Below are positions 38,240 to 44,627 of a stretch of 64,000 bases of DNA, in pieces. The translations under genes and the position numbers were made by a program. The first letter of the stretch is position 1. Each line of letters starts with the position of its first letter. Location: the NCBI RefSeq assembly GCF_041956535.1, contig NW_027192196.1, forward strand, positions 799,823 to 863,822. The letters are read 5' to 3'. A model generated the notes under the pieces. That model made no database searches. It saw only the letters and a program-made list of their open reading frames with translations, and was not told the origin of the DNA. The DNA is from Calcarisporiella thermophila CBS 279.70 (taxonomy: Eukaryota > Fungi > Calcarisporiellomycota).

Positions 38240-39747
38240 CTAATAGCGATAAAATTCAGACTTGAATGGTCCACATTCAGAAATCCCTAGATAAGCGGCC
38301 TGCTGCTCTTTTAGTTGGGTAAGGTGGTTGTCTGTCGAGCTAAGAAGAATCCTAGCCAGCCGTTCTTCGAGCGTCTTAGGAATGGTCTGAACCCCGGCGC
38401 CAATATCAGAATTCCACATAGCCACAGCCGAAAGTACGTGTGCTAAATGAGCGTAGGAAGATATGGATGAAGGCACCTTACCAAACGAAACTGACTGAAA
38501 AAGAGGACGCCCCCTAGCTAGGAGGAAGACATGACGCGTTGTTGGAAGGGTATATCGATCCACATTCGGCTTAATATTTGTGCTCTCAACGGCATTCTTT
38601 TCCAACCACGCGACATCAATTTCATTGCCGTTGCCCACGCTTAAGAGAACCGCATCCTCTCGCATATTCATCATATGATCACCCCCAATAACGGATGGAC
38701 ATCCCGTTGTAACGACAAATATATTTCCTGTGCTCATAACGTTTTCCAAAGTCGTCACCTTGTAACCTTCCATCGTGGCTTGCAACGCGCATATGGGATC
38801 AATCTCGGTCACCACGATTCTCGCTCCTAAATTTCGTAGAGCGGCAGCGCAGCCTTTGCCTACATGCCCGAAGCCTAGGATTACACACAATTTGCCCGCA
38901 ATCATGATGTCGGTCGCACGTTTTATGAACTCAGCAATCACATCGCGGTGCGAGTAATATGGAATTATTTTGCCCATGATGACGGAAGACGCGATGTTGA
39001 TGGCGGACTGGGTTTGCAGAGTTTTAGTTTGGAAGAGCTGGGTGAGCTGAGCATTACCTGCAGCGGTATCTTCAGATATTCCTCTGAGGCTTGGAAGAAT
39101 TTGGGGGTGATGCTCACAAACGAATTTGAGAAGATCACCTCCACTTTCAATGAGCAAATTTGGAGGTTGATTGTTTTCAAATGCAGTGAGCACCTACGGT
39201 GTATTCGGTGGATCATGATAGAGCTTTCTGCAAATATGATGTCAAGAAAGCAATATGAAATGTTACCTGCTCCATACACCACATATATTCAGCGTCGGTT
39301 GCACCCTGTACAGAAAAAAAATGTTTCGAATAAATATTGGAAGCCTCCATTATCAGTTTACTTGTCACTATTACCCGAAATGCAAAAACGGGTACTCCTT
39401 CAGCTACCATTGCTGCAGCAATCTCATCCTCTATTCCAAATCCATAGTTCGAAGCCCATGCAACTTCCGCTCCAAGATGGATAAGAGTTTCGATCAGTAC
39501 TGCATATTCGCGTTTTATAGGCAGGCATACTGCAATTCGAGCGCCCTTAAGTGAATTGACTAGTTCTTTAGAGGTACCTAAATTGAAGAGACCGGGCATT
39601 TCTGCCCGCGCAAGAATGATTTCGCGACGTCCAAAGGATGCGAGAGTTGGATCGGCTATTAAAATCGTGCAAGGATGATGAGCAAGAAATCATCGGCAAC
39701 TAGAAGAAGTAATGCGAACCAATTTTATATTTTGAAGGCGGCAACAT
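38240..39747 (-). CDS. S-adenosylhomocysteine hydrolase (AHCY/Sah1)-like protein, catalytic residues degenerate (probable pseudoenzyme), 433 aa
   Basis: Exons 39747-39720, 39655-39375, 39305-39267 and 39193-38240. Colinear with AHCY: YKIAD, EMPGL, LKGARIA, VLIETL, IKRATDIMIAGK, GFGHVGKG, VTEIDPICALQATMEGY, IKPNVDRY and GPFKSEFYRY*. Confidence 0.92.
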
Positions 39748-40130
39748 GGTTTTGCTTAAATGAAGTAGAAGAATCCTGAGGATATTATATACCCTCCTTT
39801 GATTACTGACTCATGCAGTTTTCATTAAGAAGGATTAATTTTCTCACAGTCATTTCACCTCAAAAGCATCGCCACAATAAATGCGATTTACCCTATTAGG
39901 AAAAATTGGTAAAGGAGACATCCAGGTCACAATGAGTGATAGGAAGTTCGACAGTTTGACGACATTTTAGCTTCGGATATTTCCTCGGGATTTTTTCCTC
40001 ATCAGGCCAAGGAGAGATTCTGTAAATATATCCAATAGACATATTTATTTCTACCACAAGATATGAGTTTGCACAGAAGTAAATTGATTCATTTTGGAGA
40101 GTAGAAAAAATGTTTGTTTCTCGTGAGCTT

Positions 40131-41219
40131 CTAGATCTCGTTGAAGGAGGTTTGGCTGTTCTTGGTCACCACTTGAACCAGCTTGCCACTTTGAGGCACA
40201 AGCTTACCAGAAGCCCAGTTAAAGATTTGCCTGAATTAAACGGGTTATTAAAAGTTGACGAAGTCATGTTGAAATAAATGCGACTTACTCTGCCAGAACG
40301 TCCAACGGAGTCCACGTGGAAAAATCTGCATCTGGCATAAATTTACGGTTCATGGGTGTGTCCAGGGTAATTCTATGAACAAGGGCTTATTCAGATTATT
40401 TCAGTCACATAGGAATCAAAGTCACTTACGGCAAAATAGCATTTACACGAGCGCCCTGTGGAAGCCCAGAGCCTGGCGCGGCCAAGCTGCGAGTAAGATG
40501 GTGAACAGCTGCTTTGGACATGCCATAGCCAAGAATACCTATTCAATATTAAGGGCAACGGGTGATATCATTATTCATATTCAGGAGGATTGAAGGTATA
40601 CTTACCAGGAGTTTCATTCAGGGCTCCATTGGCACCTGTGAGCGTAAGCAACCCTCCCCTTTACATCATTTGTGTGAGTGTTAATACAACAAAAAGATTT
40701 CACAATAATAATGCTGTATACTCTTTAAGAAATTTTGCAGCAAGCGATGCTGCGATGACTGAGGAATGTACAGATTGCTTCAACATAAGATCACACGATT
40801 CCAAAAACTCTGAATTCAAAGCATACGAGAAATGAGAATAACCAAGAGCTTAGAATTCCCACAATGTATTTACCATTGCTTTGTGCATTTCCCATGGCGA
40901 AACCACCTGCCACGCACACAATTGCATTCACCTTTTGGTCATTCAATATTTTGGCAATTCCCGAAGCAGCAGTGTCACCCTGCGCAGGAAGGGAGGCTTT
41001 TGGATCAACGAGAACATTATGATTGGCCTCCTGGTTCGGCTTAAGGTCAATGCTGCTCACTAACTTTAGCGGGTTGTTGCATTTGACGCGTTTAAGTCAA
41101 AAGTGAGCTTTCGAACCCTATTTATTACTTTGTATACTCACCCAGCCATTTTTTTTGAAGACGGAGACAATTGTTTGACCAAGGGCACCAGCCCCGCCGT
41201 AAACGATTGCATGAGACAT
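40131..41219 (-). CDS. QDPR: Dihydropteridine reductase (QDPR-like SDR); multi-exon
   Basis: [53 protein letters not shown] (YxxxK), SGLP and [21 protein letters not shown]. Confidence 0.9.
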
Positions 41220-41778
41220 AATGGAGTGTATTCGAGGATGCTGAAGCTAAGAAAAAAGAATGAAAACACGGGAACAAAAAGAATAGCGAGAGAGAAACCT
41301 TGATATGCTAAAATATCCCCCTATCGCGTGAGAAAAATTCGCCCGGTAGGGATATAATGGATGGATATACATCAGAGTGATGTCAGCGGATGACGAAAAT
41401 CGTATTTTCTTATTTTGCTGAGCGCGTCCCCCTTATTTCAAATGTTTTCCTACCGCGACATAAGATAAAAATATCAAATGTCATTTTTATTTTAACATTT
41501 GTCTAAAGTTTAGATTTCTCCATTTTTTCATATATATATAACATAAACTCTTGTTTTGACTTTGCAATCTCCCATAATCGCCATCAAGATTTTATATGCT
41601 TTCTCCCCTCGCTTACCATCATACCACATCATTGAGTTGATCTCTGCCGTCTTTTTCTTATTCCTTTGTTGAATTTATTAGATCTATTAAGGTTTGCCCG
41701 ATAGATCAAGTAATCTATTAAAACATCTTGTGTTCGCGACTATCCACCATCCCACTCTCCATATAGCCTAATCGCAAG

Positions 41779-44627
41779 ATGGAGGTGGATCAAAACATTG
41801 TTCTACTGCGCAACTACTGGGAGTTTGCAGCGGTTTCACAGTTTTTGCACACTTTCTATGAGGTTTTTGGACTAGAAACGTTCGACACAGAGGTAAATTT
41901 TACATTGATCAGTCCTTTCAATCGAATTATCTGGATTATTTATTTTTCTGGAAACCCTAGACATTAGAACGAGATCTTGCGTCTAACAGTAGAGATTTGA
42001 CAGATCTCTATATTCGGTTAATGAGAACACTCACCCAGAATCGGTTTATTAAGTGAGTAAAACTTGGGCTATCAACACTGTTTGACGAAAATAGATTTAA
42101 GAATATTTCTTTTATAGCACGGATAATTGGCAACATTATCTTGCAAAAGAGCATATGAAGCGGGATGCAGAATGTCCCTTGGGTACCCCAGAGGACCTTA
42201 CCGATTTCTATAACTTGGAGGTTCGCTCAAAGCTGACAATGCTTCACAACCTGTGCGAAGTATATATCCCCTAGTGCGTGAACCACAGAAATAGGATGTT
42301 TAATTTCCTTTTACTTTAGTGGCAACTGGATGACCCGGAGCGCTTTCGCCAGCATGTGAAAGACGAAGAAGAGGCTTTCCAATGGGTAAATCAAACTATA
42401 AGGATACCTAGAATTGAATATATTCACAGTGCCTACTCTACAGCGAGTGGATCCGATCGGATGGGACGCCAAGGGAAATACATATTGGCTTTTCGATGGT
42501 ATGTTTGCACTCAGCCCACAATGCAACTACTGCCAAAAGTATCTCACCCCTTATTACAATAGACAACAGATTATATCGCGAACTACTGCCCAAACCCAAA
42601 AGCACTCCCAAGTCAAAATCAAAGAAAAGTCGGCGGCGTAGCACACGATCTTCTGGACGGATCAAGTCTAACGGCACATTAAGCGAGGATGAAGGCGATC
42701 AAACAGAGACTAATGGCCATGAAGATAAAGAGGAGCTTCTCTGGGAGACTGTAAATGTTTTATCGCACGTAATTCTAAGACGCACTTTCTGACTACTCTT
42801 GTCGTGTAGCTATGTTGCACCATTACAGAGTGGGAAACTTTTCCCGAGCGGTTTCAGAACTCGAAGCACAGCTATGAGAAGTCTCTATACCGGTATTTAA
42901 GGGACGACATCCGCCCGAAAGTCTTGGAGGTTCTTAGGGTGAGTGACCTATTTATCAGCTAAGGCTTATTGTTCGCTTTTAATTTATTAACATTTTGGAC
43001 CTCTATTTAGGATCGGGAAAAAACACGGAAGATGGAAGAGGCTCTTCAGAACCGCAAGCGAAGTTCCCGAATATTAGTCCGAGAACTGGAGCGAAAGGAG
43101 CAGCAAAAGCAGGAGGAGCAACAACGTCGAAATCTTGAAGAGCTCGAGGCAAAAAAGAAAGAGGAAAAAGAACAAGCCGTAAGATCCACATGGACATTCC
43201 CTTCATTTGATCTCGTGATGATTGAATGGCCATTTTTGATTATAGCAACGTCAGAAGCTTGCTTTAGAACGGGAACAACGTTTGCGGGAACGCGAGCTTC
43301 GTCTGTTCAAACGCGAGTCTGCCAGTCAGACACCGGAACCAATTACACCCCAACCGGTTGTTGTTGAACCTATCGAAAGCACTCCACCCGCTAAGGTTAC
43401 TCAAAACTCAACCAAAAGTGGAAGCACTGGCCGTAAATCGTCAGGCAAGAAGACTGGACGAGGACGTGGCCGCCGGAGAAAGACTGAGACCAGGGAAGAG
43501 AGTTGGAAGTTCGATTGCGTGTGTGGTCTGCGTGGAAAGAATATCGTTAGTTGCATTTGGCTTAGCTTTTTTACGCACCGCACTATTAACTGAGCTCTTA
43601 TCATGATCAATAGGACGATGGAACTCCGCTTATTGCATGCGAGCAATGCAATGTGTGGCAGCATATTGCATGTTTGCAGAAGCAAGAGGCTGAGATGGGA
43701 CTTCCTATCACTCAAGACTGGGAGAACGTAGACTATATCTGTCGTCGATGTAAGCGAGCCTCTATGGTGGACAAGACGCCCTCGCGGTCTTCGGAATCAA
43801 AGAAGCCGGTAAAAATAAAACTTAATATGGGATCACAGCGAGCAAATGAGATCTCCCCCGGTGCGATCGTCAATCATTCGCCGACCAAGCGCCCGAGTTA
43901 TGACGGCCTCAATTTAATGAATGGAGCAGGCGAGAAGAGACCGCGCGTGGATATCAGTCCTATCCGCCAACCGGTCGTCAGCCATTCGCTTCCCCATTTA
44001 TCTGCATCACCATATAGTGGGATGGAAATGGCATCAGCACCCCTGGTACCTGATGCAGCCCACTTTTCAACGATGCACGCCCGCCCCCCAATGTTATCAC
44101 CGATGCAGACCCTTCAAACTCTAAGCCCATCCCAGCGCTCCAGCCCAATTTTTCATCAGCACTCTAGCCCTTTGCAGCTGCAGCATCAGCAATCTCCATT
44201 TCCTCCTCAACTCCCCACAAACCCTCCGATGAACTATGGCATGTTACCTCACGGGATGCCCAGTGCCCCAAACTGGCAGAATTTTATGCCACAGCACCAG
44301 CATAGCCCTTTGCAAAATACGTCACCGCCTCCGCCACCCATTTCTTCACAGCCTCATCTTCAACCTCCTCCCACTTTCTCCTCTTCACCCCTTGCCCCGC
44401 TTCTGCCACCGCTCGACCCTGGGTTACCGCGCCCTCCCATCATGATTGGATCAAGATTATCGGCTCAATCGCCCCATTCAACCGGGCCAGAACACCTTCC
44501 AAGGTTAAACTCCGCTGTAAATCCTCTAAGCCAGCCACAGCAACAGATGCCTATGATGCCAAGGCCGTTTGGCGCAGACAATGAAAACAGATATTCTCCT
44601 CCTAATGCAAGATGGAATCCGCGCTAA
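41779..44627 (+). CDS. RSF1/CECR2-like ISWI accessory protein with DDT/WHIM motifs and PHD finger
   Basis: LRNYWEFAAVSQFL (DDT-like), KLTMLHNLCEWQL (WHIM1), RVDPIGWDAKGNTYWLFDDNRLYRE, WET.CCTITEW, and the PHD CVCG...DDGTPLIACEQCNVWQHIAC...YICRRC. Pro/Gln-rich tail. Confidence 0.85.

Follow-up and report, generated by a model that had tools for sequence, protein, structure and literature searches.

What does a protein do that has kept the fold of an SAH hydrolase (SAHH) while its active site has been taken apart? SAHH is among the most conserved enzymes known, and all SAM-dependent methyltransferases are inhibited by their product SAH. To our knowledge, SAHH provides the only route for SAH removal in eukaryotes, and the only inactive paralogues described so far are AHCYL1 and AHCYL2, animal proteins that function through an added N-terminal domain and whose contact with AHCY is disputed. 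A literature search for a fungal SAHH pseudoenzyme found none. The question is raised by VTP21DRAFT_10075, a gene at positions 38240-39747 on the minus strand of a 64-kb stretch of DNA (the window) from Calcarisporiella thermophila, a thermophilic early-diverging fungus.

The gene comprises four exons with 433 codons. Its exon translations occur in order and with 100% identity in a public 433-aa protein ('uncharacterized protein VTP21DRAFT_10075 [Calcarisporiella thermophila]'). The database record of this protein served as the sequence for all full-length analyses, and the locus itself was searched exon by exon. In window coordinates, the gene and its motifs are laid out as follows:

39785..39791, minus strand: TATATAA, 38-44 nt upstream of the ATG, a candidate core promoter element read off the sequence
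39720..39747, minus strand: exon 1, with the ATG at 39747; 9 codons and 1 base, matching residues 1-9
39656..39719, minus strand: intron 1, 64 nt, GT..AG, phase 1, interrupting the Ala codon that follows the motif YK[I/V]
39375..39655, minus strand: exon 2, residues 10-103, the N-terminal part of the substrate-binding domain; holds H55P, T57K and the altered C79 motif
39306..39374, minus strand: intron 2, 69 nt, GT..AG, phase 0
39267..39305, minus strand: exon 3, residues 104-116
39194..39266, minus strand: intron 3, 73 nt, GT..AG, phase 0
38240..39193, minus strand: exon 4, residues 117-433 and the stop; remainder of the substrate domain, the two hinges, the Rossmann cofactor domain and the tail at the C-terminus
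38942..38998, minus strand: remodelled N-terminal hinge, residues 182-200; N181A, K186M, D190I, N191P and C195H in human numbering
38852..38875, minus strand: Rossmann glycine motif GFGHVGKG, retained, residues 223-230; carries D223H
38468..38512, minus strand: C-terminal hinge with the adenine pocket, both remodelled, residues 344-358; L344P, N346F, L347Q, H353K and a one-residue insertion
38243..38272, minus strand: C-terminal tail motif GPFK...YRY, retained, residues 424-433; K427/Y431 correspond to human K426/Y430

Intron 2 is in frame and free of stops, and its retention would add 23 residues. Exon 2 matched PF05221 (E=1.5e-21), and exon 4, which alone encodes 317 residues, matched PF00670 (E=1.4e-59) and also PF05221. 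Domain scores amounted to 201 bits for PF00670 and to 86.6 and 77.3 bits for PF05221, all above cut-off. The original prediction had described the spliced 433-aa ORF as uninterrupted and colinear with AHCY, in agreement with the open frame, the three GT..AG introns and the matches to both domains seen here.

Residues were mapped by HMMER alignment to human AHCY (1LI4), which we checked residue by residue. In human numbering, the replacements are H55P, T57K, C79N, D131S, E156D, T158A, T159A, N181A, K186M and D190I, and further N191P, C195H, D223H, N248C, H301N, N346F, L347Q, H353K, M358S and F362H. Kept are L54, E59, D134, E155, T157, G220/G222/G225, V224, E243, D245, T275, T276, K426 and Y430. 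Every motif substitution that had been quoted against human AHCY was present in this alignment, as were the features said to be retained, i.e., the Rossmann glycines, TEIDP with E243 and the C-terminal K426/Y430.

The adenine pocket of mammalian SAHH is built from L54, T57, E59, L347, H353, M358 and F362 (Kusakabe et al. 2015, PMC4647836). The adenosine 2'-OH contacts E156 and D190 and the 3'-OH contacts T157 and K186, with H55, D131 and H301 placed at the 5'-OH or the catalytic water; H55 acts as the general base, D131 donates a proton, and the acid at O3' is K186 (PMC4647836). In the paralogue, L54 and E59 alone are left of the adenine pocket, T57, L347, H353, M358 and F362 having become K, Q, K, S and H. 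The catalytic and ribose-binding set H55, D131, E156, K186, D190 and H301 now reads P, S, D, M, I and N. Five invariant Asp were lost from the cleft (human D131, D182, D190, D223 and D303), K57, K355, H198, H226 and H365 were gained, and the ribose site is now filled by Met, Ile, Pro and Phe. We infer that the paralogue would be unable to oxidise or hydrolyse SAH. A still-active SAH hydrolase that makes use of substitute residues could point to the predicted intact fold, to the preservation of E59, E155, T157 and L54, and to the conservative exchange of E156 for Asp. However, K186, D190, H55, D131 and H301, whose parts in proton transfer and water activation are structurally established (PMC4647836), gave way to the non-equivalent residues M, I, P, S and N, N191 and N346 are lost as well, and a fully canonical gene is found elsewhere in the genome, so that we regard continued hydrolase activity as extremely improbable.

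This canonical gene emerged from a profile search of the genome (28 Mb, 116 contigs), which returned exactly two SAHH loci. PF05221 scored 92 and 81 bits at the paralogue and 243 and 205 bits at the other locus on contig 12. The question of a second, canonical SAH1 in this genome is hence answered: contig 12 carries an uninterrupted, intronless ORF of 440 codons in which every catalytic motif and all catalytic residues are present. Paralogue and canonical Sah1 are 50% identical (219/442). Third codon positions differ in GC content as well, GC3 being 0.46 in the paralogue vs 0.75 in the canonical gene, which suggests low expression of the paralogue at best. In a search for RNA sequencing runs for this stretch none was listed, which does not mean that the gene is silent.

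How unusual such a departure is within the family was assessed in an alignment with 98 canonical SAHHs, in which 175 columns were near-invariant (at least 98% identity). The paralogue had changed 68 of these 175 columns, i.e., 39%, vs 8 in the most deviant canonical sequence and 2 in the canonical copy from the same genome. With the adenosine-contact list taken from PMC4647836, changes affected 11/12 of the invariant contact columns and 57/163 of the other invariant columns (odds ratio 20, Fisher p=1.5e-4). Conservation was inverted at residues 76-90, 181-210 and 346-375, which are conserved at 0.93-0.99 in the family yet kept at just 0.2-0.47 in the paralogue. At the N-terminal hinge, identity to the consensus was 0.33 at a family conservation of 0.99, and the Rossmann core (residues 226-255) was 0.8 identical. 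Ten of 12 key residues are lost, the most extreme case among about 170 sampled family members, all of at least 330 aa and with 50%-identity cluster representatives included. Identity to fungal SAHHs was 47-51% and about equal to all of them, whereas canonical fungal enzymes share about 80-85% with each other.

No orthologue was found with exon 4 among 5.8 billion proteins, where the next best sequence was 48% identical, or by HMMER in 1.84 billion cluster representatives, where the paralogue formed its own cluster. Paralogue-specific peptide patterns in metagenome contigs gave only 40-41% matches and no orthologue. In the collections searched, the paralogue is a single-species orphan of C. thermophila.

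The cofactor site is affected unevenly. On the nicotinamide, ribose and pyrophosphate side, NAD is presumably contacted by T158, T159, N191, N248, N346 and H353, and all six are replaced in the paralogue. Full NAD binding is doubtful because these contacts are gone. The glycine loop, D245, T275/T276, K426/Y430 and E243, the acidic residue at the adenosine ribose of NAD, are kept, so that contacts to the AMP half are preserved in cis as well as in trans. The adenosine ribose and the pyrophosphate of NAD are bound by K426 and Y430 from the adjacent subunit (PMC4647836; 2026 AHCY review, PMC12955632). The mutants K426A and K426E are monomeric and lack the cofactor, and K426 is paired with D245 (PMC4647836, PMC12955632). 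In a genuine SAHH, the tail extends into the adjacent subunit, lies over the AMP half of the NAD bound there and keeps the oligomer together. It is thus probable that the paralogue still binds an adenine dinucleotide or the ADP portion of one. The earlier designation as NAD-binding stands for the adenosine half of the pocket, with its glycine loop, E243 and K426/Y430, but does not extend to the presumed contacts on the nicotinamide, ribose and pyrophosphate side.

An AF2 model calculated from a 44-sequence alignment showed the SAHH fold with pLDDT 85 and pTM 0.82. Both Rossmann-like domains and the helix-loop-helix tail were present in this prediction. Confidence dropped only towards the two termini and within the rebuilt C-terminal hinge, where pLDDT fell below 50 at residues 350-355. 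In Foldseek, AHCY structures matched the predicted model at TM 0.88-0.95. The model is closest to open-form AHCY structures.

A two-chain model of the paralogue with canonical Sah1 scored 0.63, 0.63 and 0.02 in three runs (median 0.63), vs 0.00 for the best of three controls. The 0.63 mark was reached by 51/78 solved complexes and 2/108 mismatched pairs, and among eukaryotes by 39/65 and 2/126. In these runs contact agreement was at least 0% and partner pLDDT at least 82. As AHCY tetramers have already been solved, however, the pass may have been learnt from these structures: the score shows likeness to the tetramers rather than binding by this copy, and it does not tell a homo- from a hetero-oligomer. 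When interface positions were taken from the same two-chain model, columns conserved at 0.9 or more were kept at 28/34 predicted interface positions vs 128/226 elsewhere (p=0.0045). This fits continued selection for an SAHH-type interface.

Such retention bears on whether the gene is maintained or decaying. The distance to the canonical copy corresponds to a dN of 0.447 (NG86) with saturated dS, and first, second and third codon positions are identical at 58%, 75% and 36%. Starting from an ancestor the size of exon 4, we let sequences drift neutrally until the observed 49% identity was reached, with kappa set to 2 and base frequencies taken from the local introns and flanks. None of the 400 runs stayed free of stops (mean 9.3, minimum 2), vs no stop in the 433 codons of the paralogue. 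The mean BLOSUM62 score at differing sites was +0.03 as observed vs -0.66 +/- 0.13 as simulated (maximum -0.31). A relative-rate count gave 165 changes unique to the paralogue and 9 unique to the canonical copy, and in a quick tree the terminal branch of the paralogue ran to the program's ceiling (median 0.16). From the simulations, together with the intact splice sites and frame, it follows that most of the divergence arose under selection for an open, foldable protein. Most of the paralogue's history would hence not be neutral decay, although a very recent loss of function would still fit, and at the active site constraint appears to have been lifted, or even reversed.

A decaying duplicate, against which the original prediction had set its own reading, is thus not what the stop-free frame, the conservative replacements and the saturated NG86 dS describe for most of this history. 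In a milder form, the gene may be a long-constrained duplicate, perhaps a subfunctional SAHH or a pseudoenzyme, that has now become unexpressed or dispensable and is starting to decay. Its confinement to one species in the searched collections, its low GC3 relative to the canonical gene, the change of 39% of family-invariant columns and the low-confidence C-terminal hinge would all agree with such a relic. Neither stops nor frameshifts have accumulated, however, the three GT..AG introns are intact and the frame is kept, drift never left the frame open in 400 simulations and produced far more radical replacements, and interface and Rossmann positions were selectively retained. A relic would require that function was lost in the very recent past, and we consider it unlikely.

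Catalysis lost and the assembly and dinucleotide parts kept, the paralogue would act by binding. We therefore lean, with some reserve, towards a species-restricted and selection-maintained SAHH-fold subunit that is catalytically dead, oligomerises via its swapped tail and exerts its function by binding. The paralogue would still form SAHH-type dimers or tetramers through the C-terminal tail, and its most likely mode would be that of a non-catalytic subunit pairing with itself, with the canonical Sah1 from contig 12, or with both. The role as a regulator of Sah1 is a modelled one.

Alternatively, the paralogue could be a neofunctionalised enzyme or ligand sensor, in which the dinucleotide is kept and the cleft was rebuilt for another, probably anionic or more polar, ligand, and which would work as a homo-oligomer independent of Sah1. 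Not only losses but also gains speak for this, with five cleft Asp removed, K57, K355, H198, H226 and H365 acquired and the ribose site refilled with M, I, P and F; replacements are conservative, the ORF is maintained, and Rossmann core and tail are kept. In contrast, we find no recognisable catalytic constellation of any known family, only SAHH families match strongly and other dehydrogenase families score weakly, and the loss of the residues that should hold the nicotinamide ring speaks against redox chemistry. Nor is there a conserved partner gene or orthologue that would point to a pathway. On balance, a new enzyme or sensor of this kind seems rather unlikely.

The surroundings of the gene were inspected as well. 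An intact multi-exon gene for dihydropteridine reductase (DHPR) runs on the minus strand at about 41218-40131 and ends 384 bp before the ATG of the paralogue. One of its exons matched rat DHPR (1DHR) with E=2.3e-11, the YGMSK catalytic motif is present, and the gene is single-copy in the genome. An adh_short gene neighbouring SAH1 in Parasitella and a 233-aa neighbour were considered as DHPR candidates, and both turned out not to be DHPR. The other neighbours of the paralogue encode a polysaccharide deacetylase, a class-3 lipase, a kelch protein, an MFS transporter and orphans, and none of these suggests a pathway. Among the SAH1 neighbours in Parasitella and Ambispora, none was common to the paralogue locus or to each other.

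With respect to origin, intron 1 coincides exactly in position and phase with an intron in SAH1 of the glomeromycete Ambispora gerdemannii. Placement of the paralogue among fungi was unsettled in the quick tree, with its long branch at the ceiling. A tree constrained to join the paralogue and its own canonical copy as sisters was 1.96 lnL better than the free quick tree and was not rejected (p-AU 0.57). Shared derived residues were examined as a link to the canonical copy and comprised only V93, which is uninformative. Retroposition of the contig 12 copy was likewise considered, and only a short A-run downstream was seen, which provides no evidence for it. The simplest reading, and a likely one, is that an intron-bearing SAH1 duplicated in the Calcarisporiella lineage. 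After the duplication, the rate of change would have risen roughly 18-fold, with its focus in the shell around the active site.

A more specific history can be proposed tentatively, namely that an AHCYL-like regulator arose independently in a fungus after the intronless contig 12 copy had taken over catalysis. The ancestral intron-bearing SAH1 locus would have been freed by this take-over and reshaped under selection into a non-catalytic subunit that holds the dinucleotide. This subunit might co-assemble with Sah1 via the swapped tail and so set the methylation potential, or its de-acidified cleft might sense a new ligand. We see in this a possibility of limited probability.

If the paralogue is indeed a binding subunit without catalysis, a bare SAHH-fold pseudoenzyme would offer a cleaner system for studying what the SAHH scaffold does when it does not catalyse. 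Such a subunit might poison or stabilise Sah1 tetramers, buffer NAD(H) or bind something new. The gene also illustrates the selectivity with which an active site can be removed, with fold and interfaces apparently staying under selection. Its status as a single-species orphan limits how far these considerations reach.

Compared with canonical AHCY/Sah1 (PF05221 and PF00670), the paralogue shares length, colinear domain order and predicted fold (TM 0.88-0.95), as well as the Rossmann glycine loop, E243, D245 and the K426/Y430 tail. It differs in being only about 50% identical, in its 68/175 changed columns and in the rebuilding of both hinges. Loss of key residues is also found in divergent metagenomic SAHH-like proteins (e.g., P0257, P0266 and P0199), in which 7-8 of 12 are replaced, and this points to a recurrent loss of the active site in the SAHH family. 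Unlike the paralogue, however, these proteins have no alignable eukaryote-type C-terminal K/Y tail, and their identity to the paralogue is just 27-30%; nothing indicates a relationship beyond the family level.

The closest functional parallel is provided by AHCYL1/2, which have been reported from vertebrates and arthropods and carry an N-terminal IRBIT domain (PMC12955632). Both they and the fungal paralogue are intact AHCY-fold proteins in organisms that also have an active AHCY, with their own inactivity either predicted or known, and both have been suggested to form hetero-oligomers with AHCY, although the evidence that AHCYL1/2 bind AHCY is weak (PMC12955632). In contrast, the known functions of AHCYL1/2 are mediated by their IRBIT/PEST extension of about 100 residues or more, which is absent from the paralogue; like AHCY, it starts 5 residues before the YK[V/I]AD motif. 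It is also closer to human AHCY (E=6.7e-117) than to AHCYL1 (3mtg, 1.3e-82) or AHCYL2 (3gvp, 3.2e-80), and it is confined to one species. Finally, its active site is much more degraded. Human AHCYL2 keeps H55, T57, D131, E156, K186, D190, N191, H301 and N346, in line with the original prediction that the animal proteins retain most catalytic residues. The missing extension, the closer similarity to AHCY and the lost residues together argue, as had been proposed, for an origin independent of AHCYL1/2. By its sequence, the C. thermophila paralogue is best described not as a member of the AHCYL family but as a more radical instance of this phenomenon that arose independently.

The first intron of the pseudo-SAHH gene coincides in both position and phase with an intron of the SAH1 gene of Ambispora gerdemannii (locus L006), and the intron that the two genes share is probably of long standing in fungal SAH1. 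The second SAHH copy of the C. thermophila genome, the canonical SAH1 on contig 12 (locus L001), may be a retrocopy.

L006:8019-8099, intron of A. gerdemannii SAH1, phase 1, within the Ala codon after YKV
L001:1480-2802, canonical SAH1, G000 contig 12, intronless
Window 39306-39374, minus strand, intron 2 of the pseudo-SAHH gene, 69 nt

Intron 2 of the pseudo-SAHH gene is in frame and free of stop codons; its retention would therefore yield an uninterrupted protein carrying a 23-residue insertion, predicted to lie between the equivalents of K103 and G104.

GC3 is 0.75 in canonical SAH1 versus 0.46 in the paralogue. The canonical gene lacks introns although the C. thermophila genome is intron-rich, and its stop codon is followed at about 90 nt by a short A-run. 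Its product has five extra residues directly behind the conserved AAA motif, an insertion absent from all other sampled SAHHs.

Upstream of the pseudo-SAHH gene, the window contains:

40131-41218, minus strand, intact multi-exon gene for a QDPR-type dihydropteridine reductase (DHPR)
41300-42450, about 1.1 kb of AT-rich sequence, GC 0.38-0.41

The DHPR gene has one exon that matches rat DHPR (1DHR, E=2.3e-11) and contains the YGMSK motif. This gene, present as a single copy in the genome, lies in tandem immediately upstream of the pseudo-SAHH gene, 384 bp from its ATG. Between DHPR and the next gene, the AT-rich stretch contains no ORF of at least 90 aa.

Loss of key active-site residues is also found elsewhere in the SAHH family. 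P0257, P0266, P0199 and P0207, distant cluster representatives from public (meta)genomes, likewise lack 6-8 of the 12 residues scored, and from these sequences inactive SAHH-like proteins seem to have originated more than once.
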